From the NCBI GenBank assembly GCA_047495785.1, contig JBLDXI010000007.1, forward strand, positions 1,550,001 to 1,614,000: 64,000 bases of DNA, written 5' to 3'. The notes under the pieces were generated by a model. That model was not told the origin of the DNA. It saw only the letters and a list, made by a program, of their open reading frames with translations, and did no database searches. This DNA comes from Lepidodermella squamata. Taxonomy: Eukaryota; Animalia; Gastrotricha. Positions 16,995 through 25,023 of this stretch are shown here, one piece after another. A program made the position numbers and the translations under genes. Position 1 is the stretch's first letter. Every line of letters starts with the position of its first letter.

Positions 16995-17219
16995 GTTGGG
17001 CCATTTTGTGCTTTATTTTGTCTTGTTTTCTTCCTTTTATTAAATAAAGTAAAATGTCTTCGTATTTATCGACGACTCAAACAAAAAAAACGATTTTACT
17101 TAAAAAAAAGTTCGTTGAATGTGGCGGTACCTCAATTTCCTCAGCTTTCCGATATCGGATACCTCCGGCTTCGAGGTAGTTTGGATTGCAGCTGACCTTG
17201 CCAGAACCAGTATTCGAAA

Positions 17220-17291
17220 GGTCCCATGGTGTAGCGGTTAGCACTCTGGACTCTGAATCCAGCGACTCGAGTTCGATTCTCGATGGGACCT
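17220..17291 (+). tRNA. tRNA-Gln(CTG)
   Basis: Full cloverleaf GGTCCCA...CTCTGAA...TGGGACCT. Confidence 0.95.
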
Positions 17292-17376
17292 TGGCTACGT
17301 TTTTTGGGCAAGAGAACAAACAATCATGTGCGACTCAAGTCCCAACCAGTGTTAATCTAGTAGGCAGGTCAGCCTA

Positions 17377-17448
17377 GGGGGCATAGCTCAGTGGTAGAGC
17401 GTCTCATTCGCATTGTGAAGGTCTCGGGTTCAATCCCCGATGCCTCCA
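17377..17448 (+). tRNA. tRNA-Ala(CGC)
   Basis: Cloverleaf with G3:U70 and loop TTCGCAT; one T-T mismatch in the anticodon stem. Confidence 0.85.
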
Positions 17449-17507
17449 GTTGGCCACTTTTTACGAATTATTAATCGGAAATTACTAGAAAAGTCGGTCA
17501 AAAATGG

Positions 17508-17591
17508 TGTCAGAAGTGGGGTTCGAACCCACGCCCTCTTTCGAGGACCAGATCTTGAGTCTGGCGCCTTAGACTGCTCGGCCATCCTGAC
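17508..17591 (-). tRNA. tRNA-Leu(CAA), intronless
   Basis: GTCAGGATGGCCGAG...CTCAAGA...long variable arm...TTCTGACA. Confidence 0.95.
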
Positions 17592-17693
17592 TGCTTGACC
17601 GACCTTCGATTTGATGCAATTAACACGCAAATTCTGCTTTATTCGCAGTCACGGAGCTTGAAACCTTGCATAGGCTGCATTTTTGACAAGAGA

Positions 17694-17766
17694 GGCGCCG
17701 TGGCGAAAAGGCTATCGTGTTGGACTTTGGATACGAAGATTGAGGATTCGAGTCCATTCAGCGTCA
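17694..17766 (+). pseudogene. Degenerate tRNA, Arg-like body with TTG at the anticodon position
   Basis: 73-nt cloverleaf outline with mismatches in the acceptor, anticodon and T stems. Confidence 0.6.
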
Positions 17767-17885
17767 TGCCCTGCTTTTCCAATATGTTTGTTTATTTTCA
17801 GTAGCACACTTCAAAGGCCAGAAGATTCAATTTCGCATTTGGCTGATTGGCTACATCGACCATCAATCTGCTTCGCATTCTAAGG

Positions 17886-17958
17886 GCCTTCCTAGCTCAG
17901 TCGGTAGAGCATGTGACTTTTAATCACAGGGTCGGGGGTTCGAGTCCCCCGGAGGGCG
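17886..17958 (+). tRNA. tRNA-Lys(TTT)
   Basis: Full cloverleaf, loop CTTTTAA. Confidence 0.95.
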
Positions 17959-18032
17959 CAAGCTTTTTACCCAAAGTAACTTGTTTATAGGAAGTAACTT
18001 GCTAATGCTGCTAAGATGACGAAGATCTCGAA

Positions 18033-18105
18033 TGGGGATTAGCTCAAATGGTAGAGCGCTCGCTTAGCATGCGAGAGGTAACGGGATCGACGCCCGTATC
18101 CTCCA
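18033..18105 (+). tRNA. tRNA-Ala(AGC)
   Basis: Cloverleaf, loop TTAGCAT, G3:U70; position 1 is T, mismatched with C72. Confidence 0.85.
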
Positions 18106-18154
18106 TACTTTTTTCGGCTTTCGGCGATTAAGATGAGAAACACCTCTACACCTG

Positions 18155-18355
18155 AAAATATAGAATTGTCGCCATAGATATAGGTCGAGTAGCCTTGACA
18201 ATTCGATATTTTACGGTATAACATTCGTAAATCGTTCATATCTGAACTCGCCGCACTCGATTTACTCTTCGTAACTCGCCTCCGGCTCGTCACGACTCGT
18301 AAATCTCGGGCGGCTCCGTACAGATATAAACGTTTTACTCATGTCATACCATACA
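18155..18355. repeat. About 200-bp double-hairpin repeat, copy 1
   Basis: Highly similar to 19923-20122, with a long internal imperfect palindrome centred on GCC-TCC-GGC. Confidence 0.85.
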
Positions 18356-18364
18356 AATATAACA

Positions 18365-18525
18365 CTGTGTCTATATTTTTAACCTTGAAACACAAATCTA
18401 TATTTTTTCATACTTCAAATATAGATTTGAATATGAACTATATTTCTGATCTATATCTGAAATATAGATTCAGGTGTATCTATATTTTTGACCTGGGAAA
18501 TCTATATTTTGAATATAGATGCCCA
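18365..18525. repeat. Array of inverted TCTATATTT/AAATATAGA motifs (MITE-like relic)
   Basis: Motif repeated about 8 times in both orientations. Confidence 0.5.
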
Positions 18526-18833
18526 TTTCCAAGCCCAATACTTCCGAAGTCTTGAAACAACTAATTCTAACGGAAAAACACAGGGATATAGTTATCGCAA
18601 CGCAATTTATTATGAAGGAAAATGGAGAAATTCAATTTTGAGAATAATTTAGACGGGGACAGCTTGGCAGGCGGGCTGCAAAAATTGGCCGTAGGAATCA
18701 GAATTTCTCAGAAAACTCCGGAAAATCGGGAAAATATGAACCTGACCTTGACAATTTTCGGGGAATTTAGAGGTCTTCCGTCCCTTTTATATAGCCATTT
18801 TATACTAAATCAAAATAGAAAGGGTTAAAAATG

Positions 18834-18905
18834 TTCCCTGACCGGGAATCGAACCCGGGCCGCCGCGGTGAAAGCGCGGAATCCTAACCACTAGACCATC
18901 AGGGA
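18834..18905 (-). tRNA. tRNA-Glu(TTC)
   Basis: TCCCTGATGGTCTAGTGG...CTTTCAC...TCAGGGAA. Confidence 0.95.
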
Positions 18906-18994
18906 GGTGCAAAATCCCTGTTGTATGCGTAAACTGTGAAGAACTCAATCTATCAATGACATTACCTCCAGCAGCTCTGCGAAAAAAACGGAAT

Positions 18995-19066
18995 GGGCCC
19001 GTTCGGGAATTGAACCCGAGACCTCTCGCACCCGAAGCGAGAATCATACCCCTAGACCAACGGGCC
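18995..19066 (-). tRNA. tRNA-Pro(CGG)
   Basis: GGCCCGTTGGTCTAGGGG...TTCGGGT...ACGGGCCC. Confidence 0.95.
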
Positions 19067-19254
19067 AGCCAGACTTTCGAAGCTGGCAAGCATAGACTTT
19101 GCTCGAACGTCTCTAGCAAATGAATAACAACGAGACCACGGACCTTCAGACTTATTCGATGATGTCGATGTCATTTAAAATAGCGGATGCGCCTTCATGC
19201 CTTGGTGATTTGTGATACACCAGCTCTTAATTTTCCATCCTCCAACTCCTTTGA

Positions 19255-19342
19255 CCTGCGACAGCTCAGCTGCTAGAGCGGAGGACAGTAGATGCAGAGC
19301 AGCTATCTCCATAAGCCGGTGGTTCAAGTTCGCCTCGCAGGA
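19255..19342 (+). pseudogene. tRNA-Tyr(GTA) pseudogene with intron remnant
   Basis: CCTGCGA...GGAGGACAGTAG[intron]...TCGCAGGA, with substitutions at T8, G18 and U33. Confidence 0.75.
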
Positions 19343-19356
19343 TTGCATTTACAAGA

Positions 19357-19428
19357 GGCCCGTTGGTCTAGGGGTATGATTCTCGCTTTGGGTGCGAGAG
19401 GTCTCGGGTTCAAATCCCGGACGGGCCC
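19357..19428 (+). tRNA. tRNA-Pro(TGG)
   Basis: Full cloverleaf, loop TTTGGGT. Confidence 0.95.
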
Positions 19429-19494
19429 AAGCATTTTGCACCAAGGGCTGAAGCGGCCGCAGAACAAAAAGCGGATCAAATGAAACAACGGCAA

Positions 19495-19565
19495 AATCTA
19501 ATGGTTCAGTGGTAGAATTCTTGCCTGCCACGCGGAAGGCCCAGGCTCGATTCCCGGCCAAATTT
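19495..19565 (+). pseudogene. tRNA-Gly(GCC) pseudogene
   Basis: TGGTTCAGTGGTAGAATTCTTGCCTGCCACGCGG...; acceptor stem destroyed and B-box mutated. Confidence 0.75.
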
Positions 19566-19667
19566 TCTTGCATTTCAGGTTCGACTCCCTGCCAAGGATT
19601 CACCATTAAAAAATGGGTACAGGTACTATCAGCCTAGTTTTTAATAAAGTGCAAAAACGTTCGTTGC

Positions 19668-19740
19668 CGCCCGATGTGGGGCTCGAACCCACGACCCTGG
19701 GATTAAGAGTCCCATGCTCTACCGACTGAGCTAACCGGGC
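19668..19740 (-). tRNA. tRNA-Lys(CTT)
   Basis: GCCCGGTTAGCTCAGTCGG...CTCTTAA...ATCGGGCG. Confidence 0.95.
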
Positions 19741-22600: not shown

Positions 22601-22668
22601 GGTAGCGCCTCCGTTCAAGGCGCCAGATTTAGGCTCTAGTCTCTTCAGTTCGAACCACACCGCTGCCA
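22601..22668 (+). pseudogene. tRNA-Leu(TAG) pseudogene with internal deletions
   Basis: Aligns to the intact copy at 23303-23384. Confidence 0.75.
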
Positions 22669-22760: not shown

Positions 22761-22810
22761 ACGCTGGGCCCATAACCCAGAGGTCTGTAGATCGAAACTA
22801 CGCTCTGCAA
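22761..22810 (+). pseudogene. Initiator tRNA-Met 3' fragment
   Basis: CTGGGCCCATAACCCAGAGGTC...GATCGAAAC...CTCTGC; 5' end missing. Confidence 0.75.
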
Positions 22811-22923
22811 AAAGTCAATTTTTTCTCTTGTTTTCTTCACCATAAGATGAATATGCTAAGCAAGCTGTTCTCGGTATTATTTTCAACTACCGATTGGCGT
22901 CGGTAACAGAAATCTATTCAACT

Positions 22924-23083
22924 AAACTTACCTGGCACTGGGATGAACCGAGCTCAGCAAGTCGGTCGCCCCAGGGCGAGGCGGGCCATTGCACTGCGGT
23001 CCGCTGACCCCTGCGCTCTGCCTCATCGGTGGAGTCGGGTGCAAAATATTTCACTTGGGTATCGGCGTTCGCGCCACACCCGT
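22924..23083 (+). ncRNA. RNU1: U1 snRNA variant
   Basis: 5' ACTTACCTGG, helix H GCAC/GTGC, four stem-loops, U1A loop ATTGCAC, terminal TTCG tetraloop. Confidence 0.9.
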
Positions 23084-23302
23084 AAAATTACGAAAAAAAT
23101 ACCGTATTTCTCGAAAATACGCCGCCCCTTCCTGAGTATTGAAACCATCCTTTAGACTATCCCGATGAAAATAATGGAATGATCGGTGGGGCGATCTTGG
23201 AATTTTATGACTTTGAATGACGGTTTCATTCGGAATTTTCAATTTTATTCTCAAGCGCAAGTTTTTACTCGTTGTTCGGGCTTTCCGACATCTTTCTATC
23301 AA

Positions 23303-23384
23303 GGTAGCGTGGCCGAGTGGTCTAAGGCGCTAGATTTAGGCTCTAGTCTCTTCGGAGGCGTGGGTTCGAACCCCACCGCTGCCA
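23303..23384 (+). tRNA. tRNA-Leu(TAG)
   Basis: Full cloverleaf with long variable arm. Confidence 0.95.
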
Positions 23385-23545
23385 TCATTTTGCCATCGGC
23401 CAAGGCGAAACCGAAACTCAAACTAATTTCAGCAGGCAGTGGGCAAATATTTGAAGTCATTCGTGACTCGGGGTAATTAGCAATGAGGTTTCTTTATGTT
23501 ATAGCCAAGTATATTGAGCCAGCTGGTCATCTGGTATTTCAGCTA

Positions 23546-23627
23546 GTCGCTATGCCCGAGTGGTTAAGGGGTCTGACTAGAAATCAGATGCGGTCTCCGC
23601 GCGTAGGTTCAAATCCTACTGGCGACG
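23546..23627 (+). tRNA. tRNA-Ser(AGA)
   Basis: TCTGA-CTAGAAA-TCAGA arm, long variable arm, G73. Confidence 0.95.
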
Positions 23628-23701
23628 AACATTTTTGCAAACTGATTGGAAATCTGAGTTCTGCAACAGTTCCCTTCGATAATAGTTCTCACATTCATGA
23701 T

Positions 23702-23773
23702 GCGTCAGTGGTGTAACGGTCAGCATGGTTGCCTTCCAAGCAGCCGATCCGGGTTCGACTCCCGGCTGACGCA
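23702..23773 (+). tRNA. tRNA-Gly(TCC)
   Basis: Full cloverleaf, loop CTTCCAA. Confidence 0.95.
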
Positions 23774-23860
23774 CACGTTTTTATAGCCCATATTCGAGAG
23801 TAGCAAGCTCATTACTATAGTACAGATTGAAGGTGATCTTGCCCGAACCGGTTTTCGAAG

Positions 23861-23932
23861 GGTTCCATGGTGTAGCGGTTAGCACTCTGGACTCTGAATC
23901 CAGCGACTCGAGTTCGATTCTCGATGGGACCT
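23861..23932 (+). tRNA. tRNA-Gln(CTG)
   Basis: One base different from 17220-17291. Confidence 0.95.
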
Positions 23933-25023
23933 TGATATGTTTTTTCAACCAAAATTCAACCCAACTGCTGGAAAACTTTTAATTATTAATTCCTTCTACG
24001 TTGTACCAATAGATCAATTTTATGCGGCCAAGTTATGCCGTTATCCCACCTTTCCCGGTCAGTTCACACGAGAATTAAACGATGTGTAGCCTCGGCTATG
24101 GCAGATTTCACCTGCCAAGACCAACTGTGTGAAAGGCAGATGGGGCTCCGAGCCGCTAAACGCTAACTCTTGACCTGATTTTGGATAAAAAGGCACTACA
24201 ACTTTTCCAGTAGGCAATAATAGAATGAAGTAAATTGGACGCTTCTTCTCTCAAGCGGAAAATTTTTCAGTGAACAAGATCAAATGCATCTGATTTTCTA
24301 TTTTTTTACGGCGATTATATCGATTTTGAAGCCGTAATAGTTCTGGCTGAGAGGCTAATAATTTCGCTCGCTTATTGTACTTCAAACCTGAATAATTCGA
24401 GAATATGCATCGAAGACTTTAATTCCCAGACATTGATCGCACTTGAAAGGTTTGAGGTTGTTCCCACTTATATTGTCTGATATTCTGTAATTTGTAAATT
24501 CCCGCTGTTAATCCGAAAACTGACCATGAGTGATTTTCGAAATCGGAACATGTTTTTATACCCTGGAATTCGATAATTTTCTCATTGTCGACTTATCCTC
24601 GAATAACGTTTTTAATCCTTTTTGTAATAAACATTTCATAGAATAGGTCGTGTGGATGCTATCGAATAATAAAAAACATTAGGTACAACTTCCACCATAA
24701 ATCGCAGCCTTGCTGTTTATGCTATAATAGGAAATGTATTGGCACTATTATAGAGTTCGCCGCTTCGCTCAACCGTGAAATTTGCAAGCTATACGATTCG
24801 GATGCAATTGATTCCGAAGCCGTATAGACTATACTTTTTCTTACCGAAGGAATTTAACTCTAATGATAACAGGGAATCAATATGAAACTTGCCATAGCAT
24901 TTTAATCCCCATATACGCTCATCGGGCTGGCAAAATAATCATTAATTAATTAAAGTGCCTCTTTCTTACATCTGATTTTTGAACCTATACACATTGCACG
25001 TTTTAAAGGCGGACACATTTTGA

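Follow-up and report, generated by a model that had tools for sequence, protein, structure and literature searches.

Is the U1 snRNA gene in this window a specialised variant, or is it the normal U1 of its animal? The window is the whole 64,000-nucleotide stretch of Lepidodermella squamata DNA that was analysed (G000:C7:1550001-1614000). It belongs to a 121-Mb assembly, which was the genome surveyed. The initial annotation had described a U1 with intact stems and a rewritten U1-70K loop and Sm site. It had proposed a specialised U1-like snRNP, possibly built on paralogous U1-70K or Sm/Lsm proteins. We found that the gene is an ordinary member of the animal's multicopy U1 family. In its loop it is the most typical member.

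Architecture of the U1 gene in the window

The Rfam search retrieved one U1 gene from the window. It is full length, with 160 nt on the forward strand. The match to RF00003 scored 102 bits against a cut-off of 69.5 (E 1.6e-24) and covers the model end to end (1-166). Such a match, with complete U1 features, is far beyond chance. In a genome-wide alignment, the body of the gene is identical over all 160 nt to three other copies (L028, L029 and L031). The positions of its parts and of the flanking elements are given in Table 1.

Table 1. Features of the U1 locus, with positions in the window
Feature	Position	Strand	Basis or remark
Decayed tRNA-Leu(TAG), with D-arm and variable-arm deletions	22601..22668	+	Part of the U1 cassette
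Initiator-type tRNA-Met remnant, 3' half only, 5' half replaced	22762..22809	+	
Distal upstream block with degenerate octamer ATGCTAAG (other subfamilies: ATGCAAAT)	22846..22865	+	Common to L001 and L034; putative promoter role, from conservation
PSE-like block (CAACTRCCGAT.GG.GTC) and proximal box AAATCTATTCAACT ending at -1	22883..22923	+	Counterparts in all promoter types; putative role, from conservation
U1 snRNA gene	22924..23083	+	Rfam RF00003 (102 bits) and genome-wide alignment
SL1 apical loop GCUCAGCAAG (U1-70K site)	22952..22961	+	Human-numbered changes A29C, C33G and G34C
SL2 loop AUUGCAC (U1A site)	22988..22994	+	Invariant in all copies
Sm nonamer AAUAUUUCA	23045..23053	+	Identical in 42 of 42 genomic U1 copies; nonamer as defined in PMC4383343
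SL4 with UUCG tetraloop (23068-23071)	23056..23082	+	Rfam structure, covariation and minimum-free-energy fold
A-rich 3'-box-like element	23084..23100	+	Directly 3' of the gene, conserved among copies; putative function

The 5' arm of the gene is AAACUUACCUG. It contains the single-stranded segment that pairs with splice sites, ACUUACCUG, which is invariant in 42 of 42 genomic copies. Helix H pairs G12-C15 with G116-C119. All four stem-loops, SL1 to SL4, form. When the 160 nt are folded for minimum free energy (ViennaRNA), the four-way junction and SL4 are present, in agreement with the Rfam architecture. The single-stranded Sm region, AAAAUAUUUCAC, lies between helix H and SL4 at about 23043-23054. 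The initial annotation had described the stems, the 5' end, the U1A loop, the UUCG tetraloop, the SL1 loop and the Sm site, and the Rfam match and the fold bear out that description. A random or decayed U1-like sequence was ruled out by the Rfam score and by the covariation reported below.

The RNA resembles canonical metazoan U1 (RF00003; human, PMC4383343). It shares the splice-site-pairing 5' arm, helix H, the four-way junction, the UUCG of SL4 and the AUUGCAC loop. The 10-nt SL1 loop and the length of about 160 nt are shared as well (human, PMC4383343). Unlike human U1, it begins with the bases AAA rather than AUA and has one extra U after helix H. Its stem sequences differ from the human ones, with the pairing kept. 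Its Sm nonamer is the one in Table 1 rather than AAUUUGUGG, and its loop carries the three changes listed there.

The U1 gene family of the genome and its flanks

At least 42 U1 genes were retrieved from the genome with RF00003, with scores from 79 to 110 bits. The pattern of the 5' arm plus helix H occurs at 47 genomic sites. The alignment and the counts of loops and Sm sites cover all 42 RF00003 matches. One U1-like site on the reverse strand (G000:C13:4190540-4190556) has the splice-site arm AGTTACCTG instead of ACTTACCTG.

The Sm nonamer is the same in every one of the 42 copies. The wider Sm region is the same in 41, and the remaining copy has one C immediately before the nonamer. The Sm site had been taken as the mark of a variant, and sharing of the altered sites by all U1 copies as the sign of a lineage-normal U1. 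For the Sm site, that sharing is what the genome-wide comparison shows, and the site is normal for the lineage.

The SL1 loop occurs in nine versions (Table 2). The loop of the window copy is no outlier; it is the most frequent version, with 20 of the 42 copies. Loop position 7 is C in 30 copies and the canonical G in 12. Loop position 2 is C in 22 copies, on three backbones (the main class, L017 and L038). The canonical-loop copies outscore the others with Rfam. The subfamilies are located on different contigs.

Table 2. SL1 loop versions in the 42 genomic U1 copies and in metagenome matches
Loop	Genomic copies	Metagenome matches	Remark
GCUCAGCAAG	20		Loop of the window copy
GAUCAACAAG	7	at least 41	
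GAUCAUGAAG	5		
GAUCACGAAG	4		Human loop
GAUCAGCAAG	2	at least 41	
GAUCAAGAAG	1		
GUUCAGCAAG	1		
GCUCAUGAAG	1		
GCUCAAGAAU	1		
GAUCACCAAG		at least 27	
GAUCAUCAAG		at least 11	
GCUCAUCAAG		at least 3	C at the A29 position

The family was examined for signs of selection. Base pairing was counted on 28 distinct full-length paralog sequences with the Rfam U1 structure. Among these, 92.9% of the cells are paired, against 36-48% in slid controls. Compensatory changes on both sides occur at seven pairs: SL1 has four, SL2 two and SL3 one. The covariation score was reached by 0 of 500 shuffles.

Identity was also compared region by region in 18 copies of the main GCUCAGCAAG class. It is 98.6% in the U1 coding region, 95% in the upstream tRNA block and 81% in the 110-nt spacer. 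In the 200 nt downstream it is 51%, the same as after shuffling. The U1 body is therefore kept constant while its surroundings drift. This constancy could come from purifying selection, from gene conversion limited to the gene or from both. No disabling change was seen in the 5' arm, the U1A loop, the Sm site or the stems of the GCUCAGCAAG class, by alignment and covariation. The initial annotation had read the gene as a product of selection rather than decay, and the compensatory pairs and the contrast between coding region and spacer support it on that point.

Nearly every U1 copy, with any loop, has a tRNA-Met(CAT) about 116 nt upstream and a tRNA-Leu(TAG) further upstream. The spacer contains blocks that are kept in all promoter types. 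These are an octamer-like block at about -70, a PSE-like block between about -40 and -20 and a box whose end is at -1. Homology among the copies stops after the A-rich 3'-box-like element. The main GCUCAGCAAG class has AACCAAAT at the site of the octamer ATGCAAAT of the canonical-loop subfamilies. In the window copy, a promoter of the type seen in the canonical-loop copy L001 precedes a main-class coding sequence, so the variant loop is found behind two promoter types. Pol III co-transcription with the upstream tRNA was set aside, given the T-run that follows the tRNA position in the spacer and the conserved upstream blocks of U1 itself.

Both cassette tRNAs are broken in the window copy and in its near-twin L034 (L034:661-1000, reverse strand), and the U1 body is perfect. 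With both upstream tRNA genes decayed in the window copy, the locus is not uniformly maintained. The window U1 is placed between two tRNA gene clusters. ARAGORN called 10 genes in the first (17219-19740) and 4 in the second (23303-23933). A weak tRNA-like Rfam match at 17694-17766 (33 bits) has no ARAGORN call. The tRNA-Gly(GCC) called by ARAGORN at 19494-19567 is absent from the Rfam list.

The SL1 loop, the Sm site and their protein partners

The differences at the two protein sites are real, as the initial annotation had reported. To call the sites rewritten was too strong, with three of the ten loop bases changed and seven of the nine positions of the Sm nonamer matching the U4-type nonamer AAUUUUUGA.

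The canonical SL1 loop, GAUCANGAAG, is the U1-70K site, and the window copy keeps 7 of its 10 bases. Against GAUCACGAAG the count is likewise 7 of 10, with positions 2, 6 and 7 different, in what would be a putative binding site for U1-70K. The kept bases are G28, U30, C31, A32 and A35-G37 in human numbering. They include the bases contacted by the U1-70K RRM in the human structure. In the human U1 snRNP, G28 is flipped out between Arg172 and Tyr112, and U30 is packed on Leu175 and bonded to Asp177 (PMC4383343). C31 and A32 are stacked on the two RNP phenylalanines, and A35, A36 and G37 stack (PMC4383343). The A29-A36 pair closes the human loop (PMC4383343). C33 and G34 are stacked on each other between Arg191 and Lys138, and both residues form salt bridges with the C33/G34 phosphates (PMC4383343). 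The A29C change removes the A29-A36 pair of the human complex. In a ViennaRNA prediction for the free RNA, C at position 2 extends the stem by C30-G38 and U31-A37, with G29 bulged and a small energy gain. This predicted extension could alter U1-70K binding.

The genome encodes U1snRNP70_N (PF12220) at one locus (C17:3338569). A query with the 70K-specific C-terminal RRM exon retrieved the same U1-70K gene only (G000:C17, about 3,338,560-3,339,900). No second U1-70K-like protein was found with PF12220 and the 70K RRM exon in the 121-Mb genome. At E <= 0.01 the RRM exon retrieved no second locus and no U11/U12-35K-like gene, and as a short query it has little bearing on the minor spliceosome.

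The U1-70K exons were compared with solved structures one by one. They align with residues 111-158 and 160-244 of human U1-70K. The RNA-contact residues Y112, F148, R172, D177, R190, R191 and L196 are kept. So is F106, by eye and outside the structure searches (the RNP2 exon has TLFIARL, and the human protein has TLFVARV). Two residues are substituted, L175 by V and R200 by K. Loop 3 of the RRM (beta2-beta3; L043:1936-2079) is KDTETEKS, against YSKRSGKP in human, and has Thr in place of Lys138. This part of the protein holds RNA positions 33 and 34, the most variable bases of the RNA loop. Plant and nematode U1-70K proteins have a loop 3 of the D-x-E-T type.

The LSM domain (PF01423) occurs at 17 genomic loci in a rough exon-level count, which is about the usual Sm and Lsm set. 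No expansion by extra Sm/Lsm paralogs was seen in this genome-wide count. With a single U1-70K gene, whose RRM is conserved, and about 17 LSM loci, the genome speaks against the paralogous 70K or Sm/Lsm proteins that had been suggested.

The U4-type Sm nonamer used for comparison is quoted in PMC4383343. The window nonamer lacks the usual G of the AAUUU(G/U)UGG type and is in the correct location for putative Sm loading. In the same genome, U2 has the canonical Sm site GAUUUUUGG (L052:1501-1696). The Sm sites of U5 (GAUUUCUUG; L044:1501-1618) and U4 (ACUUUCUGG; L048:1501-1636) are off consensus, so loose Sm sites are apparently a trait that this lineage tolerates. Among the sites compared (U1, U2, U4 and U5), that of U1 is apparently the loosest. 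A U1 Sm site without G is fixed throughout the whole gene family.

About 20 U5 genes lie in a tandem-like array with a spacing of roughly 1.8-2.4 kb (G000:C25:47161-107259). U2 genes are arranged in a similar array (G000:C15:3264183-3290274). The U4 and U5 genes also adjoin a tRNA gene.

Natural variation was examined in metagenome contigs. The genes counted have the 5' arm, a GNUCANCAAG loop and the U1A loop. Unrelated eukaryotic U1 genes with C at loop position 7 are present on at least 120 contigs (Table 2). The U1 bodies are very diverse among the matches listed, so C at human G34 is used by many eukaryotic lineages. Among these natural U1 genes, variation is wide at loop positions 6 and 7. 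The position of human A29 is C in at least one other lineage as well. Three environmental U1 sequences with the loop GCUCAUCAAG (L129, L131 and L163) have a short 3' end, and their Sm site is the normal AAUUUUUGA. The window loop differs from the canonical one at three positions that are apparently tolerant. The U1-70K loop in nature is less fixed than in the textbook, with C common at human G34 and C at A29 in 22 genes of this genome.

Among the 81 distinct full-length metagenome sequences listed, most have the Sm site AAUUU(G/U/C/A)U(G), and a few have no Sm G, for example AUUUCUCC and AAUUUCUCA. The Sm site of this genome is absent from these 81 sequences. The exact pattern of this lineage's own U1 had no match in the metagenome contigs. 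Six sequences with the loop GAUCAACAAG (L061, L063, L091, L098, L099 and L132) have an Sm-like AUUUCUC(C) without the usual G. They belong to a further lineage whose U1 Sm site lacks G.

Readings of the loop versions

The window U1 is probably a working-type copy of an ordinary multicopy family. It would have its own promoter, standard proteins, the Sm site normal for the lineage and the commonest loop. The at least 42 full-length U1 genes would descend from a cassette of tRNA-Leu, tRNA-iMet and U1. Each copy would have its own PSE-like promoter upstream for transcription, which would end at the A-rich 3' box. The RNA would assemble with a standard Sm ring and with single U1-70K, U1A and U1C proteins. 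Its unchanged 5' arm would pair with 5' splice sites. An apparently reprogrammed U1 would then be the normal U1 of a little-studied animal lineage.

The loop versions may instead be differently regulated U1 isoforms, which we consider unlikely. They would use the same proteins and differ in U1-70K affinity or in timing, like embryonic and adult U1. Developmentally switched U1 isoforms are known from Xenopus, mouse, sea urchin and Drosophila, and the mouse isoforms have distinct protein affinities (PMC4291461). The family resembles these systems in having several subfamilies per genome, each with its own promoter flanks and few base differences (PMC4291461). It is unlike them in that the differences lie in the U1-70K loop itself and in its linkage to tRNA-iMet genes. 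The nine loop versions coexist and track the promoter subfamilies (AACCAAAT or the octamer ATGCAAAT), which occupy different contigs. The compensatory changes point to structural constraint on more than one subfamily. However, eukaryotic U1 genes vary freely at loop positions 6 and 7, and the differences may be neutral. The variant loop of the window copy behind an L001-type promoter also weakens a strict link between loop and promoter. It is similarly doubtful that subfamilies differing in promoter and in loop (A, C or U at the closing position and G or C at position 7) form particles with graded U1-70K affinity for different stages or transcripts, in a lineage that also tolerates unusually loose U1, U4 and U5 Sm sites. 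If the loop isoforms were differently expressed, the family would be a natural series for how U1-70K reads its loop.

An amplified set that is inactive or expressed at a low level, made up of the window copy or of the entire GCUCAGCAAG class, is quite improbable. Such a set would be homogenised by duplication or gene conversion, and the canonical-loop copies would supply the U1. The main form expressed could be that of the 12 copies in which position 7 is the canonical G. The broken tRNA-Leu and tRNA-iMet of the window cassette fit an inactive set, as do the higher Rfam scores of the canonical-loop copies and the structural pair that A29C loses from the canonical complex. Sm loading is poor in human variants whose U1-70K site is changed (PMC8457000). 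The family also resembles the human vU1 and U1 pseudogene family in being multigene, with many members substituted in the U1-70K loop or Sm site (PMC8457000). In human, canonical U1 makes up at least 96% of the particles, with variants that are minor and often unstable (PMC8457000). Unlike in human vU1, by the gene counts here, the "variant" loop is the most numerous one, its copies are nearly identical and the Sm site is invariant. The 20 copies have at most a few differences, despite 19% divergence in the spacer and unrelated downstream flanks. Their upstream blocks and 3' box are conserved, and the 5' arm, U1A loop, Sm site and stems have no disabling change.

The specialised U1-like snRNP on paralogous U1-70K or Sm/Lsm proteins has in its favor only the sequence differences at the two protein sites, and it is largely refuted and most improbable, given an Sm site common to every U1 copy, a loop that is the commonest version, single matches to the U1-70K N-terminal domain and to the RRM exon, and 17 LSM-domain loci that make up about the usual Sm and Lsm set.

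Contigs of two metagenome runs of one study (X1 and X2) matched the variant U1 without a difference, joined to the promoter flank of the main class (…GGACCTTTGGCC). They run into that flank and are therefore genomic DNA, silent on transcription. A U1 copy like L037, with the loop GAUCAGCAAG, was retrieved from run X14 (organism E).
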